A stretch of DNA of 64,000 nt from Octopus sinensis (GCF_006345805.1 NC_042997.1:72478001-72542000), one strand, 5' to 3'. Counted from the stretch's first letter, positions 16,076 to 62,708 are shown. A program made the numbers and translations. Notes: generated from the sequence alone by a model not told the origin.

Positions 16076-16141
16076 AATATGAGTCAAATGAGGAGATGTC
16101 TGCAGCCGAGCTGATGCGGGATATGAAACAGGAGATGGAAG
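16076..16141 (+). CDS. Exon E1 (66 nt, divergent): EYESNEEMSAAELMRDMKQEME
   Basis: tttatttctgcag|AATATGAG...ATGGAAG|gtatgaattac. Same donor and upstream AT block as the array; phase 1-1 and open. Confidence 0.7.
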
Positions 16142-17093
16142 GTATGAATTACACACACACACGCACGCACACATAGACACATACAAACACGCACTCACAC
16201 ACACATAAGATACGATGAAGAATTCTTTTCATATAAGCAATAGAAAAAGAAGTATACAAGGCATCAGAAATAAAATACAAGAAACAAGTAAAATGTGATA
16301 CACCGATGACAAAACACCATTAAATAAAACCATAAAGCATACATGCGTTCAGAATAGAACAAAACAAGCAATCGGACATTTAAATTGACCTTTACATTTC
16401 ATCAAAAATTAATCTTGCTGGCTATTGATAGTCACATTAATTAATTAATTAATTGTCCATGTTATATAGTGAAAATGTGTACTTAGGTCTATGATTACAT
16501 CTTATTAATCTTTCGGAGCATCTGTTAAGTTCTTTTCACTCAACAAAATGCATAAGGATTTCTTTGAACATAAATAGCAATTTCTAGAAAAGGGTTCGTA
16601 CGGGTATGCATTATTTGTTATGGACCAAGTAGTACTATATTTTATTCCATTGGCTTTTAGTTTCATATTAGGTCCGCTAGTGAGGTAGAATGCCCCTTAT
16701 CAACTCTGTTGAAACTGACAACATTATTGTATATATCTCTGTATCTAGCAATATTTAGTGTACATCTGTAGATATATTTAAGCGCACACGTGTATGAACA
16801 TACATACATATCTCCAGCAACCAAGAGATTACCTATGTACATACATACATACATACATACATACACAATGCATACATACATATATACATACATACATACA
16901 TACATACACACACACATATATAGTCAATTAAAAAACAAAGTAGAAGAAGAAGAAGAAGAAGAAGAAGAAGAAGAAGAGAAGAAGAAGAGAAGAAGAAGAA
17001 GAAGAAGAAGAAGAAGAAGAAGAAGAAACAAACGTGTGGTCGTAGCATAAGCAATGTATTAATGAGACGCTCGGAGAAAGAAGAGAGTTGTTG

Positions 17094-17126
17094 TTTTAGG
17101 TTTCGAGCATAGCTCTTCGTCGAAAA
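17094..17126 (-). ncRNA. Degenerate hammerhead-like motif
   Basis: Reverse complement: uuu UCGACGA a gagc uau gcuc GAAA cc UA aaac; core altered. Confidence 0.3.
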
Positions 17127-18231
17127 CAAGAAAACAGGAAAGTCCAGAGGGAAAGAAGGAAGAAAGAGAAAATCGCCAATAGCCTACCTGCGGTTACATT
17201 TTTAAAGTGACCGGAAGTAGGAGGAGAAGACAGTGCTTTCTGGGACAGGAGAGTGTGAAGATGGTCGGTATGTGTGTGTATGTATGCTAAACGCAAAACA
17301 TCAGACAGTTAGGTGATACAACAAAACATCCAGTCGGACGATACAAAAAACAAGGACGGGTCATTCGGAGTTTTCTTTCCTCAGTCGAGTTCCAGATTAT
17401 CTTTGCAACCCATCTAACGCATATATATATATATATATATATATATATATATATGTATATATACACATACATACATACATACATACATACATGCATACAT
17501 GATGGCTGCCCCCTCATTATCGAGTATGGCCGTTGCACGAAGCTCAACTGTTATTGGTGCTGTGATCGAATGTGACTTTTATTTGCTTTTTAAGGCTACA
17601 GCCAGCCATTCAGTTGAGACTCACAGCACTATCAACAATCATGAACAATGTTATCGTGCAATGCCTGTGCAAGAAGATTTTTTTTAAAGTGAGGAAAGGC
17701 TGTGCACTGAATCAATCCCACTCACTAAGCAACAGCAGCCATAATCCGAAAAGAAAAACAAGTCGACATCATCGGTAACCACTGAGCCGCAGGTTTTATG
17801 TCGGAGTTATCTCAGTTACCTGAGTTACCTTCTCCTAGAAGGATGCCCTAACAAAGGCTAGGAGTTCTTCACTTCCAATGGTTTAACTGCGCGATCGGAT
17901 ATTCAGTCCGATTATTTCTATGTCCCCGCGTATGATACAGCCTTACGCCATAAAAAAAATTACACTTTTATTGGATGGCCGTTGACTCTCAAGAGTTCCT
18001 CCGCCCTCTGATGGGTTTTGTTGTTCGTCCCACAGGGTGTCCAATAAACACTCTTCTCACCAAGCAAGCTTGGTGGTGTTGCCGGTTTAGTCGCCGACAG
18101 GCCGACCATGCAACAGGTTGTCGTGGGTTACATGTTACCAGTAACATACATACATACATACATACATACCATACATACATACATACATACATACATACAT
18201 ACATGCATACATACATACATACATACTTACA

Positions 18232-18935
18232 TACAGGGTGCGTGGGGTAAACCTTTAAACTTATAATTTCGCGCATGCTTATTATTTGTTTTTGATTTTG
18301 CCGACTACACATTTTAGTAGGGTCAGTTGGGCACTGTCTGCGAGAAAAACAGTACCATGACACAATACCCTCTGCCAGAAATTTGGTAAAAAACATGCTA
18401 TACTGCTTGGCATTCACGCCGGAAGCTCCAATATGAACAAATGGTGAACACACAGAGCTACCGTTGGCTTGCTGTGTCCCCAAAACATGTAACGAGATTG
18501 ATAAATATCAAACATTCAGTCAACATCATGGTATTTAGAGTGATCGCTAGTGATGGCGACGTTATGGCTCCATTCATCTTCCCACACGGCCTCATACTCG
18601 ACACGGAGGACTACATCAAGTGCCTGGAGGAAGTAGTGCAACCCTGGGTCAAGGGTGTGGCTGCTGGAAGACCATATGTTTGATAACAGGACACGGCACC
18701 ATTCCACATAAGCAGGAGAACTCAATCATGGCTGTCAAACAATTTCTAACATCTGGCTACCTAATTCCCAGACTGCAACCCCGTTGATTATTATGTGTGA
18801 GACGCAGTTGAACGAGACCAACAAAACTCCTTGAAATACCAAAGATGAACTTAAAGCAAAGATTATGGCAGCATTCACCAACTTAAACGAGAGGACCGTC
18901 CAGAAGTGTTGCAGGAGATTCCGAAGTCGGCGCTT
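18232..18935 (+). mobile_element. Tc1/mariner-family transposase remnant
   Basis: Starts TA|CAGGGTG; encodes IMVFRVIASDGDVMAPFIFPHG...AGRPYV..QD..P; second copy at 25370-25730. Confidence 0.8.
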
Positions 18936-19435
18936 CGATGCTTGAAATTTTTATAGAGAATTCATTTCTCGTCAGTAGTTTCTATTCGGTCCAAAAAAGG
19001 TTCATTCGTGAAACGGGAGAGCAAAGAAGAGCATACGTTCACTCTCTGCGCGCGATTAGACTCGAAAAGTTTGTGAGAAGCCCACTGACCAATTTGCTGA
19101 TTTTTCCGATGGCACGCAGGTGTCGATAAATGGTTGAATGATCAAATCCAAGCTTCTCTGCCAGTTCCTCAACTGTTACGATGGTATTTTATTTGCAGGG
19201 TTTGCAGGACGTCCTCGTCGAGCACTACATATCTTTCAGGATGAGACACATCTTCTAGGCTGTAGTTTCCGATTCGGAATTTCTGGAACTACCATTGACA
19301 CTGGCTTACACTTATTGTTCGATCCCCATAAACTGGATTAATATTCCTCGCATTTTCCGTTGCGTTGTTGCCTTTATTGAACTCATAGAGCAAATTATGC
19401 CGAATGTATTCCTTTGTCACTTTCGAAAGAAGTCC
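18936..19435 (-). mobile_element. Mariner (Mos1/Hsmar-like) transposase 5' remnant
   Basis: KEYIRHNLLYEFNKGNNATENARNINPVYG HTH domain. Confidence 0.8.
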
Positions 19436-61091: not shown

Positions 61092-61444
61092 TATATATAT
61101 ATATATATAATATATATATATATATATATATATATATATATATATATATATATATAAAATTTATAATGTATTATATTATAATGTAAACCTTTTTGAACTC
61201 ATAATATTCTGTGCGTGTTTGAATATACAGATACAATACCAATATCCCACTGAACTTTTTAATAATTCCTTCTATATATTCAAATTTTGTGTTTGAAGCA
61301 GCTCGTTAATATACATCTTATGAATATCATATACTTAATGTATATGTCGTTAAAGGCTTGAAAGTTGCGGTATTTCATCTAAGAGATCTGCCTCTGAAAA
61401 CCTAAGCTAAGCGAAACGAAATCGCGCTGAAAATGAACGAGAGC

Positions 61445-61486
61445 GACAGAGCCGATATTTCGCGGTTATTTTCGCTCATCAGTGTC
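61445..61486 (-). ncRNA. Minimal type I hammerhead motif (canonical core)
   Basis: Reverse complement: gaca CUGAUGA gcg aaaauaac cgc GAAA uaucgg CUC uguc; stems I and II perfect, stem III imperfect. Confidence 0.55.
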
Positions 61487-62244
61487 ATATACTCATCTAC
61501 TAGACGCGTTTCTGGGTCTTTAGCCTTCCTTTGTTGAAGATACTGAAAGGAGGTAAGACAGGGGAGATAATGAAGCCGTGCAAGCGTTACTACTGCTATA
61601 TTTGTTCTGACCATGTGGTCTGCGAGCACAAATCAGCCACTGATATTGATTCTTCTACTAGTCGCTATCTCCTTAGAGAGGAAGCCTAAAGAACCAGAAA
61701 CTCATCTAGAAGTCGAGGTTTATGGGTGTATAGACTGCAGATGACATCTTACTCGTCGAAACCTCACACACATATACATGTCTAAGATATGCATGTATGT
61801 AGGCTGGAAGTATATATGCATAAATATGTGTATGGTTGATTATATTACCTACCTGTATTCGCATTGTTTCTAAATATCCTGTTTTTTTTTTTCCAGTAGT
61901 ATGGTGTGGTTTAAATGTAAAAAAATATGCCTGCAATGCCTGAAATTGGATGTCATCAACAAAAAGTGTCTGAATTTGGCTCTCAATAAAATCTCTATAA
62001 TTTTATTGAAATGTTTTCAATTTGTATTTGTAAGGTGCATGCTATGCGATCTCTTTGTTCCAGGAAAATTATTGACAAGAATAAACAACAAGTTTGACGG
62101 ACGTCAGACGATATATCTAAATCCGTATATCAAATACCTTCTATGATTGTGAATGGTGTTTTCATTGCGACTTAATAGCATAAAAACTTTAAATATTTAA
62201 CATTGAAATTTCATACAAAGGTTTTCTCCTTTTCGTTTCTCTAG

Positions 62245-62322
62245 AATTCGAGGAGACTACATCAGCAGAAGAGTTAGAGTCTGTAGTCGAAGAGACGGAG
62301 AATCTAGAACTAGAGACACCAG
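62245..62322 (+). CDS. Exon E20 (78 nt): EFEETTSAEELESVVEETENLELETP
   Basis: gtttctctag|AATTC...ACACCAG|gtatga. Confidence 0.82.
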
Positions 62323-62630
62323 GTATGAATATATACACGTACATACATACATGCATGGATACATGCATGCATGCATACATACATACATACATACATACAT
62401 ACATACATACATACATACATACATACATACATACATACATGCACGTGCGTCACAATGTCTATAAGAATTATTCAAATCTGTATTTCAGATGCGTTGTATG
62501 ATTGTGTATGGGTTATGTATTATGTCCCAAATATTCAAACAACAAAAAAAAAAAAAGAGAAAAAGATAGCAAATTTTAATATTTAACATTAAATGTTTAT
62601 ATAAAAGGTTTCCTATTACTATTTCTCTAG

Positions 62631-62708
62631 AATTCGAAGAGAATACGGTACAAGAAGAGTTGGAATCAGAGGCCGAAGAGACGGAGAAGGTAGAGCTGGA
62701 GACTCCAG
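62631..62708 (+). CDS. Exon E21 (78 nt): EFEENTVQEELESEAEETEKVELETP
   Basis: atttctctag|AATTC...ACTCCAG|gtaatg. Confidence 0.82.

Follow-up and report, generated by a model that had tools for sequence, protein, structure and literature searches.

In the PEVK and poly-E regions of titin, each mini-exon of about 75-84 nt encodes a single repeat of about 26-28 residues, and these exons join in frame and are differentially spliced. Densely acidic proteins associated with low-affinity Ca2+ binding or biomineralization include calsequestrin, HRC, the acidic region of junctate/ASPH, and the Asp-rich shell-matrix proteins of molluscs. The titin PEVK region has been linked to block duplication associated with long interspersed nuclear elements (LINEs), and it is under-annotated by standard predictors (PMC6469411). 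More broadly, symmetric, tandemly duplicated exons that encode disordered proteins have been described as a class in the human genome (Schad, Kalmar & Tompa 2013, PMC3632108). Here we describe an array of mini-exons in a 64,000-nt stretch of the Octopus sinensis genome (GCF_006345805.1 NC_042997.1:72478001-72542000), referred to below as the window. The array contains 21 units, which we consider probable internal exons (20 usable and one dead) of one large plus strand gene of the octopus lineage, mostly unannotated and encoding polyanionic, disordered repeats.

The units are found on the plus strand only, between 16076 and 62708, and span 47 kb (Table 1). They were identified with a regular-expression scan for acceptor, exon and donor, followed by an nhmmer profile built from the matches, and these scans of the window found no extra unit upstream of 15962 or downstream of 62845. 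The start motif of the units was enriched, with 36 matches relative to 12 ± 3.6 in shuffled sequence. Unit lengths range from 63 to 117 nt (fourteen of 78 nt, four of 63 nt, and one each of 66, 75 and 117 nt), and all 21 are multiples of three. The variants differ from 78 nt by -3, -12, -15 or +39 nt, all in frame. Most units occur in pairs, with 121-599 nt between the partners and 1-12 kb from one pair to the next, and the exonic share of the window is 2.4%, in keeping with an earlier estimate of under 3%. The divergent unit E1 was recovered by nhmmer with E=1e-5 for the exon alone and 1.4e-27 when its flanks were included. The longest unit, E15, contains four internal sub-repeats of 24-27 nt (EETENLEA, EEETENLEA, EESENLEA and EESQNLEP), with the motif ..ENLEAEE...

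Splice signals are strongly conserved across the array. The acceptor AG is present in 20 of the 21 units, the exception being E13 (unit 49382), which has GG in its place and is probably a dead pseudo-exon as judged from that change. Pyrimidine content at positions -22 to -3 is 80-95% in the units, relative to a mean of 48% over all 3370 AG dinucleotides in the window, only 1.2% of which have a tract that is at least 85% pyrimidine. The donor GT is present in all 21 units (GTATGA in 18, GTAATG in two, and GTATAA in one), the exon 3' end is CAG in 18, and the 5' end is AA in every unit except E2, which begins with GG. The exon bodies are 69% purine and GAR-rich. All units are in phase 1-1, with the first two bases finishing a codon and the final base opening the next, and the junction G/AA (a slash marks the splice site) therefore restores Glu at the split codon. 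Because the introns are all in phase 1 and the exon lengths are multiples of three, any subset of units can be joined in frame. When joined, the 20 intact units give 1524 nt, or 508 codons, with no stops; the other two frames contain 48 and 27. A preliminary description of this DNA had claimed 21 dispersed units with canonical splice signals, all in phase 1-1, a stop-free frame of 508 codons from 20 intact exons, and regeneration of Glu at the G+AA junction. With the acceptor of E13 set aside, each of these statements was reproduced here, and every number in that description that was checked agrees.

The mere similarity of the copies is not diagnostic of coding function because the duplicated unit includes flanking intron; it is the manner in which the copies differ that discriminates. 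The sequence common to the copies takes in at least about 250 nt upstream of the exon and about 40 nt downstream of it. Averaged over pairs of units, column identity reaches 0.88 at the donor, 0.78 across the acceptor tract and 0.76 within the exon, and in the introns it declines with distance from 0.64 to 0.45. Within the exons, column identity at codon positions 1, 2 and 3 is 0.80, 0.82 and 0.65 (Mann-Whitney p=4.6e-4), and the third-position effect remains when three units from a related Octopus vulgaris locus are included (p=1.2e-4). No such periodicity was found in shifted frames, in which position 1 or 2 was treated as the third. Likewise, the ratio of the proportions of nonsynonymous and synonymous differences (pN/pS) is 0.39 in the claimed frame versus 0.75 and 1.05 in the shifted frames (Nei-Gojobori, 66 pairs of 78-nt units), and it is 0.35 when window units are compared to those of the O. 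vulgaris locus. Young sister pairs, when pooled, have a pS of 0.176 and a pN of 0.049, for a ratio of 0.28 (Fisher p=1.9e-4), indicating that constraint persisted past the latest informative duplications. Length changes in the exons are all in frame, and alignment of two duplicated blocks places 12 and 23 gap events in their respective flanks. Taken together, and at the level of sequence, these frame-specific signals are the behavior predicted for coding DNA and not for a non-coding satellite or transposable element (TE). The claim that the units behave as protein-coding exons is thus supported by periodicity, frame-specific pN/pS, in-frame indels and conserved splice sites.

Each exon would encode a repeat of about 26 residues, for which the window consensus is EFEENTIPEELESEAEETENLELETP. 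The conceptual product of 508 residues consists of 41.1% E, 5.7% D, 6.1% P, 1.8% V and 2.2% K, with a net charge of about -226 (about -0.44 per residue) and an isoelectric point of 4.05. Cys, Trp, His, Arg and Tyr are all absent from the translation of E2-E21, as had been reported. An AlphaFold2 prediction from the single sequence of this conceptual product contained neither helices nor strands (predicted local distance difference test score 50, predicted template modeling score 0.12). Searches of Pfam and the PDB returned no match for the window product or for CAI9715271.1, the O. vulgaris relative described below. The polyanionic, disordered product that had been proposed is therefore supported by composition, charge and an AlphaFold2 model without structure, and the segment is predicted to be polyanionic and intrinsically disordered.

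In order to identify relatives of this family, a profile was made from an alignment of di-repeats and used in a full HMMER scan of 1.84 billion cluster-representative proteins. Two matches were obtained, only one of which is a genuine relative (E=4e-24, 100.5 bits, 5 matched stretches); the other is an unrelated repeat protein with a period of 75 aa. The relative is CAI9715271.1 (UniProt A0AA36AH76), a 238-aa 'Hypothetical predicted protein [Octopus vulgaris]', whose gene lies at OX597814.1:67.39-67.48 Mb in assembly GCA_951406725.2 and whose model spans 79 kb. Word-indexed searches of 5.8 billion proteins with a 486-aa concatenation of the repeats, with the di-repeat profile and with CAI9715271.1 itself recovered nothing other than CAI9715271.1; those made with the concatenation and with CAI9715271.1 were confined to the 8000 proteins that had the most words in common with the query. 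Metagenome contigs were scanned twice for exon and splice-site patterns, and no matches were obtained. The description of a lineage-specific family is consistent with this distribution as far as it goes, the only true profile match among the 1.84 billion representatives being an O. vulgaris hypothetical protein.

The O. vulgaris locus was analyzed as a 99-kb sequence (OX597814.1:67.39-67.49 Mb). The annotation from which its gene model derives used EVM/PASA to combine ab initio predictions with evidence from Iso-Seq, RNA-seq and protein alignments (PMC10700109). In this model homologous units are joined serially (EFADNTMPEELESEAEETKNLELETP, AFEDYTKPEELESEAEVTENLEMETR and EFEENAIPEELESETEEAEDLELETL), and its exons at 42300-42377, 43649-43726 and 43903-43980 of the locus are each 78 nt long and bounded by ag/..G/gtatga, with a split Glu codon as in the window. 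The junctions predicted for the window are thus those at which an annotated gene splices homologous mini-exons, also in phase 1. Profile similarity, exon boundaries and intron phase all place the window units in the same EFEE..ELETP repeat family as CAI9715271.1. The two loci are alike in having 78-nt exons with AG/AATTC..CCAG/GTATGA boundaries, phase-1 G/AA junctions, and large TE-rich introns, but the O. vulgaris gene is at another locus and contains only 4-5 canonical repeats plus divergent units. Its units are 60-76% identical to those of the window in protein and 70-79% identical in DNA, and units from both loci interleave in the tree. No collinear high-identity match was found between the two sequences, only TE copies at 88-94% identity and the units at 70-79%. 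By this comparison the O. vulgaris locus is a putative paralog of the window and does not overlap it, and the window would be either another part of that same array, a second array paralogous to it, or the corresponding array of a close relative. An adjoining 113-aa gene (exons at 93329-93359 and 94532-94609), cut by the end of the locus, begins MEQRMEMEKS and apparently joins in phase 1 to a further unit (ENEQMIKENNAFRESRFTQKQELDIP), so that the family array extends past the analyzed sequence. The preliminary description had also called the gene hidden; this is correct for the 21 window exons, which are in no database protein searched, but a paralogous stretch is already annotated, if badly.

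The architecture of the window array belongs to a known class, that of disordered repeats encoded by symmetric exons, for which titin PEVK is the most familiar case, and the sequence family is new. Similar to titin PEVK, the array has a Glu-rich disordered product, one mini-exon per repeat, and block duplication flanked by LINEs. It differs from titin in that no sequence homology was detected by profile scan or in Pfam, in that P, E, V and K together make up 51% of the product, nearly all of it E and with only E enriched, and in that the introns are far longer, with no Ig/Fn3 exons among the window open reading frames (ORFs) tested. Like the class surveyed in the human genome, the window exons are symmetric, encode disorder, and arose from internal tandem duplication; unlike the members of that human survey, they form an orphan octopus family of unusually extreme charge. 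The dense acidic residues and predicted disorder also resemble those of polyacidic Ca2+-binding and biomineral proteins, but there is no homology, the product is Glu-rich instead of Asp-rich, and its N-terminus is outside the window.

Several results weigh against the assignment of these units to a functional gene. Avoidance of stops is marginal: the 12 copies tested are stop-free, with p=0.016 under a star model of random substitutions on the consensus and p=0.065 by a conservative count of events. In the young blocks, the raw identity of the exons is not significantly higher than that of the introns. The word-indexed searches found no database protein that contains the window exons, and neither the search with CAI9715271.1 nor the profile scan found a further annotated protein of the family in any octopus. 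The window yielded neither a start or stop exon nor one that encodes a globular domain, and the start, the stop and any globular domains must therefore lie outside it. Furthermore, the CAI9715271.1 model is automated and has flaws. One of its exons is stretched by 24 nt through its own pyrimidine tract, its final unit is read outside the family frame, and its locus contains internal duplications that are 99.5-99.98% identical, one of them inverted. The gene crosses both duplicate copies, with the exon 'EVLISENEMAQNLEEDAP' appearing twice in it. It is probable that the model is truncated, or else chimeric across near-identical assembly duplications, and the locus itself, from its sequence, is likely to combine an assembly artefact with a chimeric gene model.

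The absence of the window exons from all database proteins searched and the lack of an exon identity excess over intron in the young blocks, along with the lost acceptor of E13 and four decayed remnants of units, would fit an array that was long coding and now belongs to a gene, or a part of one, that is silent and decaying. We regard such a relic as unlikely, since an open frame, a complete pair of splice sites and an in-frame length are all preserved in 20 of the 21 units, pN/pS is 0.28 even in the youngest informative sister pairs, and no stops are present although Glu codons are a single G>T change from one. That the units are instead a non-coding tandem or TE-derived repeat, with an open frame and splice-like ends by accident, is exceedingly improbable. 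Part of their similarity is inherited with the flank of about 250 nt or more that the duplicated unit takes in, TEs and microsatellites are abundant in the window, and LINE fragments lie beside one block. However, such a repeat is not expected to show periodicity at third positions or a frame-specific pN/pS of less than 1. Exon indels come in multiples of three next to arbitrary indels in the flanks, and within the window 21 intact units lie on plus versus none on minus. In addition, the unit has no TE protein or terminal repeats of its own, and a separate annotation pipeline spliced homologous units at matching sites.

Two more specific gene types were also considered. The array could be the elastic PEVK/poly-E-like region of a giant muscle protein of the titin, sallimus or twitchin type, with Ig/Fn3 exons beyond the window, which would be a special case of the coding gene proposed here. 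Mini-exons of about 78 nt that each encode a Glu-rich repeat of about 26-28 residues, block duplication beside LINEs, and omission by predictors all recall that system (PMC6469411), but it is a quite unlikely match: no titin-family protein was matched among the 1.84 billion representatives, Pfam found no domain in the product, in CAI9715271.1 or in 20 window ORFs beyond those of transposon type, K and V are nearly absent, and the record for the 99-kb O. vulgaris locus has no Ig/Fn3 annotation. Mutually exclusive splicing, as in Dscam-type clusters, usually acts on tandem arrays of homologous exons, and the array resembles such clusters in having a shared upstream intronic sequence, here an element 110-140 nt upstream of about 10 units. 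If the exons were used as alternatives in this way, a transcript would carry just one unit or a few. The window shows no sign of docking or selector complementarity, with the reverse-complement partner of the upstream element absent from it even at 8/31 mismatches, and RNA folds of two units were not consistently better than shuffles (z = -3.3 and -1.2). The upstream conservation is broad and fades with distance, as a residue of duplication would, the symmetric, in-frame octopus exons require no exclusivity, and the O. vulgaris model strings several units serially. Exclusive or single choice of exons is thus very doubtful. The same two folds were not convincing as pairing of an exon with a conserved intron flank, of the kind that forms double-stranded RNA for editing, and the fold with z = -3.3 is probably aided by self-complementary microsatellite sequence in the flank.

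As exons of a large coding gene, the window units are themselves likely to be expressed, and each is built as a cassette complete in itself, in which a strong pyrimidine-tract/AG acceptor and a CAG/GTATGA donor enclose a purine-rich body. Purine-rich (GAR) exon bodies are splicing enhancers that help to define tiny exons in long introns, and in this gene they should help the spliceosome to locate a 78-nt exon amid introns of up to 12 kb. Cassettes would then be joined in frame in any subset, with G/AA restoring Glu each time, and the result would be a chain of repeats whose length may be set by the number of cassettes present in the gene and included by splicing. At about -0.44 charge per residue, a chain repels itself into an extended form and takes up divalent cations weakly but in quantity. 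The preliminary description had proposed Ca2+ or mineral binding, an elastic or spacer tail, and phosphoregulation as possible roles. With much less certainty than expression, the most likely role of the chain would be that of a charge-extended disordered spacer or entropic spring, that of a low-affinity, high-capacity polyanion responsive to Ca2+, or both. A bolder proposal, which we consider unlikely, is that the window and the O. vulgaris locus are both pieces of a single octopod-specific gene of giant size (>150 kb), in which dozens of mini-exons can be interchanged. Their combinatorial splicing as cassettes would set the length of a kilo-residue, polyglutamate-like chain. In the muscle, nerve or secretory tissue of cephalopods, such a chain would serve as an independently evolved counterpart of the titin PEVK/poly-E spring or as a Ca2+ buffer that can be tuned.

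If the array is expressed, it represents a sizeable gene of the cephalopod lineage that standard annotation largely overlooked, owing to exons that are repetitive and low in complexity and that make up about 2% of the locus. It would also be a clean invertebrate case of a disordered protein enlarged by duplication of symmetric mini-exons, with a length that can be altered by evolution through block duplication and perhaps by splicing, and its extreme charge predicts an extended, cation-sensitive chain. If it is not expressed, it is a decaying exon array of modest interest. The comparison further draws attention to a problematic part of the O. vulgaris reference, with near-identical duplications and a probably chimeric model.

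Table 1. Features of the window and internal duplications of the related O. vulgaris locus. Coordinates are those of the window unless the locus is named.
Feature	Coordinates	Strand	Length (nt)	Remarks
E1	16076-16141	+	66	Divergent, EYESNEEMSAAELMRDMKQEME, phase 1-1; cag/ acceptor, /gtatga donor; boundaries read from sequence
E2	21707-21784	+	78	GFKGNMISDELETEAEKTENLELETP; first bases GG give junction codon Gly
E3	28311-28385	+	75	Shorter by one codon
E4	28754-28831	+	78	Second exon of pair with E3, intron 368 nt
E5	31360-31437	+	78	
E6	32037-32114	+	78	Partner of E5, intron 599 nt
E7	33108-33170	+	63	Class with in-frame 15-nt deletion
E8	33548-33610	+	63	Partner of E7
E9	35096-35173	+	78	
E10	35394-35471	+	78	Partner of E9, intron 220 nt
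E11	47311-47373	+	63	Copy identical to E7
E12	47797-47859	+	63	Sister of E8, 5 differences
E13	49382-49459	+	78	Open frame; acceptor GG, not AG
E14	50037-50114	+	78	Donor gtataa
E15	52080-52196	+	117	In-frame expansion by internal sub-repeats
E16	54179-54256	+	78	Copy identical to E9
E17	54477-54554	+	78	Copy identical to E10
E18	55834-55911	+	78	
E19	56033-56110	+	78	Partner of E18, intron 121 nt; donor gtaatg
E20	62245-62322	+	78	Sister of E18
E21	62631-62708	+	78	Sister of E19; donor gtaatg
E7+E8 block	33080-33645	+		Copied at 47283-47895 (E11+E12), 87.6% identity
E9+E10 block	34545-35555	+		Copied at 53628-54636 (E16+E17), 98.8% identity over 1 kb
E18+E19 block	55692-56160	+		Exons sister to E20+E21 (62107-62760)
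Unit remnant, decayed	33250-33269	+		3' end and donor only, GGAGACACCAGgtatgaatta
Unit remnant, decayed	47453-47472	+		Same remnant, in duplicated E11+E12 block
Pseudo-exon remnant, decayed	35580-35614	+		Donor destroyed
Inverted fragment, unit 3' end and donor	53580-53603	-	24	Directly before second copy of the 1-kb duplication
LINE reverse-transcriptase ORF	53-1827	-		
LINE reverse-transcriptase ORF	41099-43922	-		
GIY-YIG (Penelope-like) ORF	3071-3586	+		
Mariner-type transposase fragment	25696-26136	-		
O. vulgaris locus duplication	1-20791 = 53900-74726			
O. vulgaris locus duplication	21017-29942 = 86169-77232			Inverted
O. vulgaris locus duplication	29946-34589 = 94834-99478			

The history of the array was reconstructed from a neighbor-joining tree of the units and self-BLAST of the window, which identified three duplicated blocks of two exons each (Table 1). 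From these copies, the array is shown to have grown as blocks of two exons were repeatedly duplicated in tandem, along with at least about 250 nt of flanking intron. One dead acceptor and four decayed remnants show, by the same reading of the sequence, a turnover of the birth-and-death type. The 1-kb duplicate at 98.8% identity, with two identical exons and an inverted fragment beside it, represents either an artefact of assembly or a rearrangement that is very recent. Direct plus strand copies of a LINE reverse-transcriptase fragment (46503-46810 and 48053-48357), 75% identical to each other, bracket E11 and E12, an arrangement suggestive of block duplication or insertion associated with LINEs. 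Another repeat, about 0.9 kb long, recurs next to exon pairs, at 27053-27963 and 35811-36697 (87% identical) and at 49680-49954, and it may either be an element in its own right or belong to an ancestral duplication unit of larger size.

The surrounding sequence is animal DNA rich in TEs and microsatellites. The TE ORFs (reverse transcriptase, mariner and GIY-YIG) are separate insertions, and are thus not part of the unit. The conserved donor motif occurs in the window at the units and remnants only, revealing no extra exon in 1-16075 or between the units. Pfam scans of 10 long ORFs on both strands gave transposon-type domains or nothing significant, and those of 10 plus strand ORFs upstream of and between the units gave no significant match. 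Rfam and tRNA scans of the window were empty. A (GAA)n tract at 16941-17027, which reads as poly-Glu on the plus strand, was considered as a poly-E exon and rejected as a microsatellite without splice sites. A second microsatellite of the (GAA)n type at 20517-20615 has its poly-Glu reading on the minus strand. Finally, the 12-kb intron between E10 and E11 contains about four tandem copies of a 720-730-bp unit (38352-41353), which are 93-95% identical and each open with (TAT)n. A lone copy at 85% identity is found at 9808-10404, and a related piece is present at 40893-41304 of the O. vulgaris locus; the unit is probably a TE-derived or satellite repeat.

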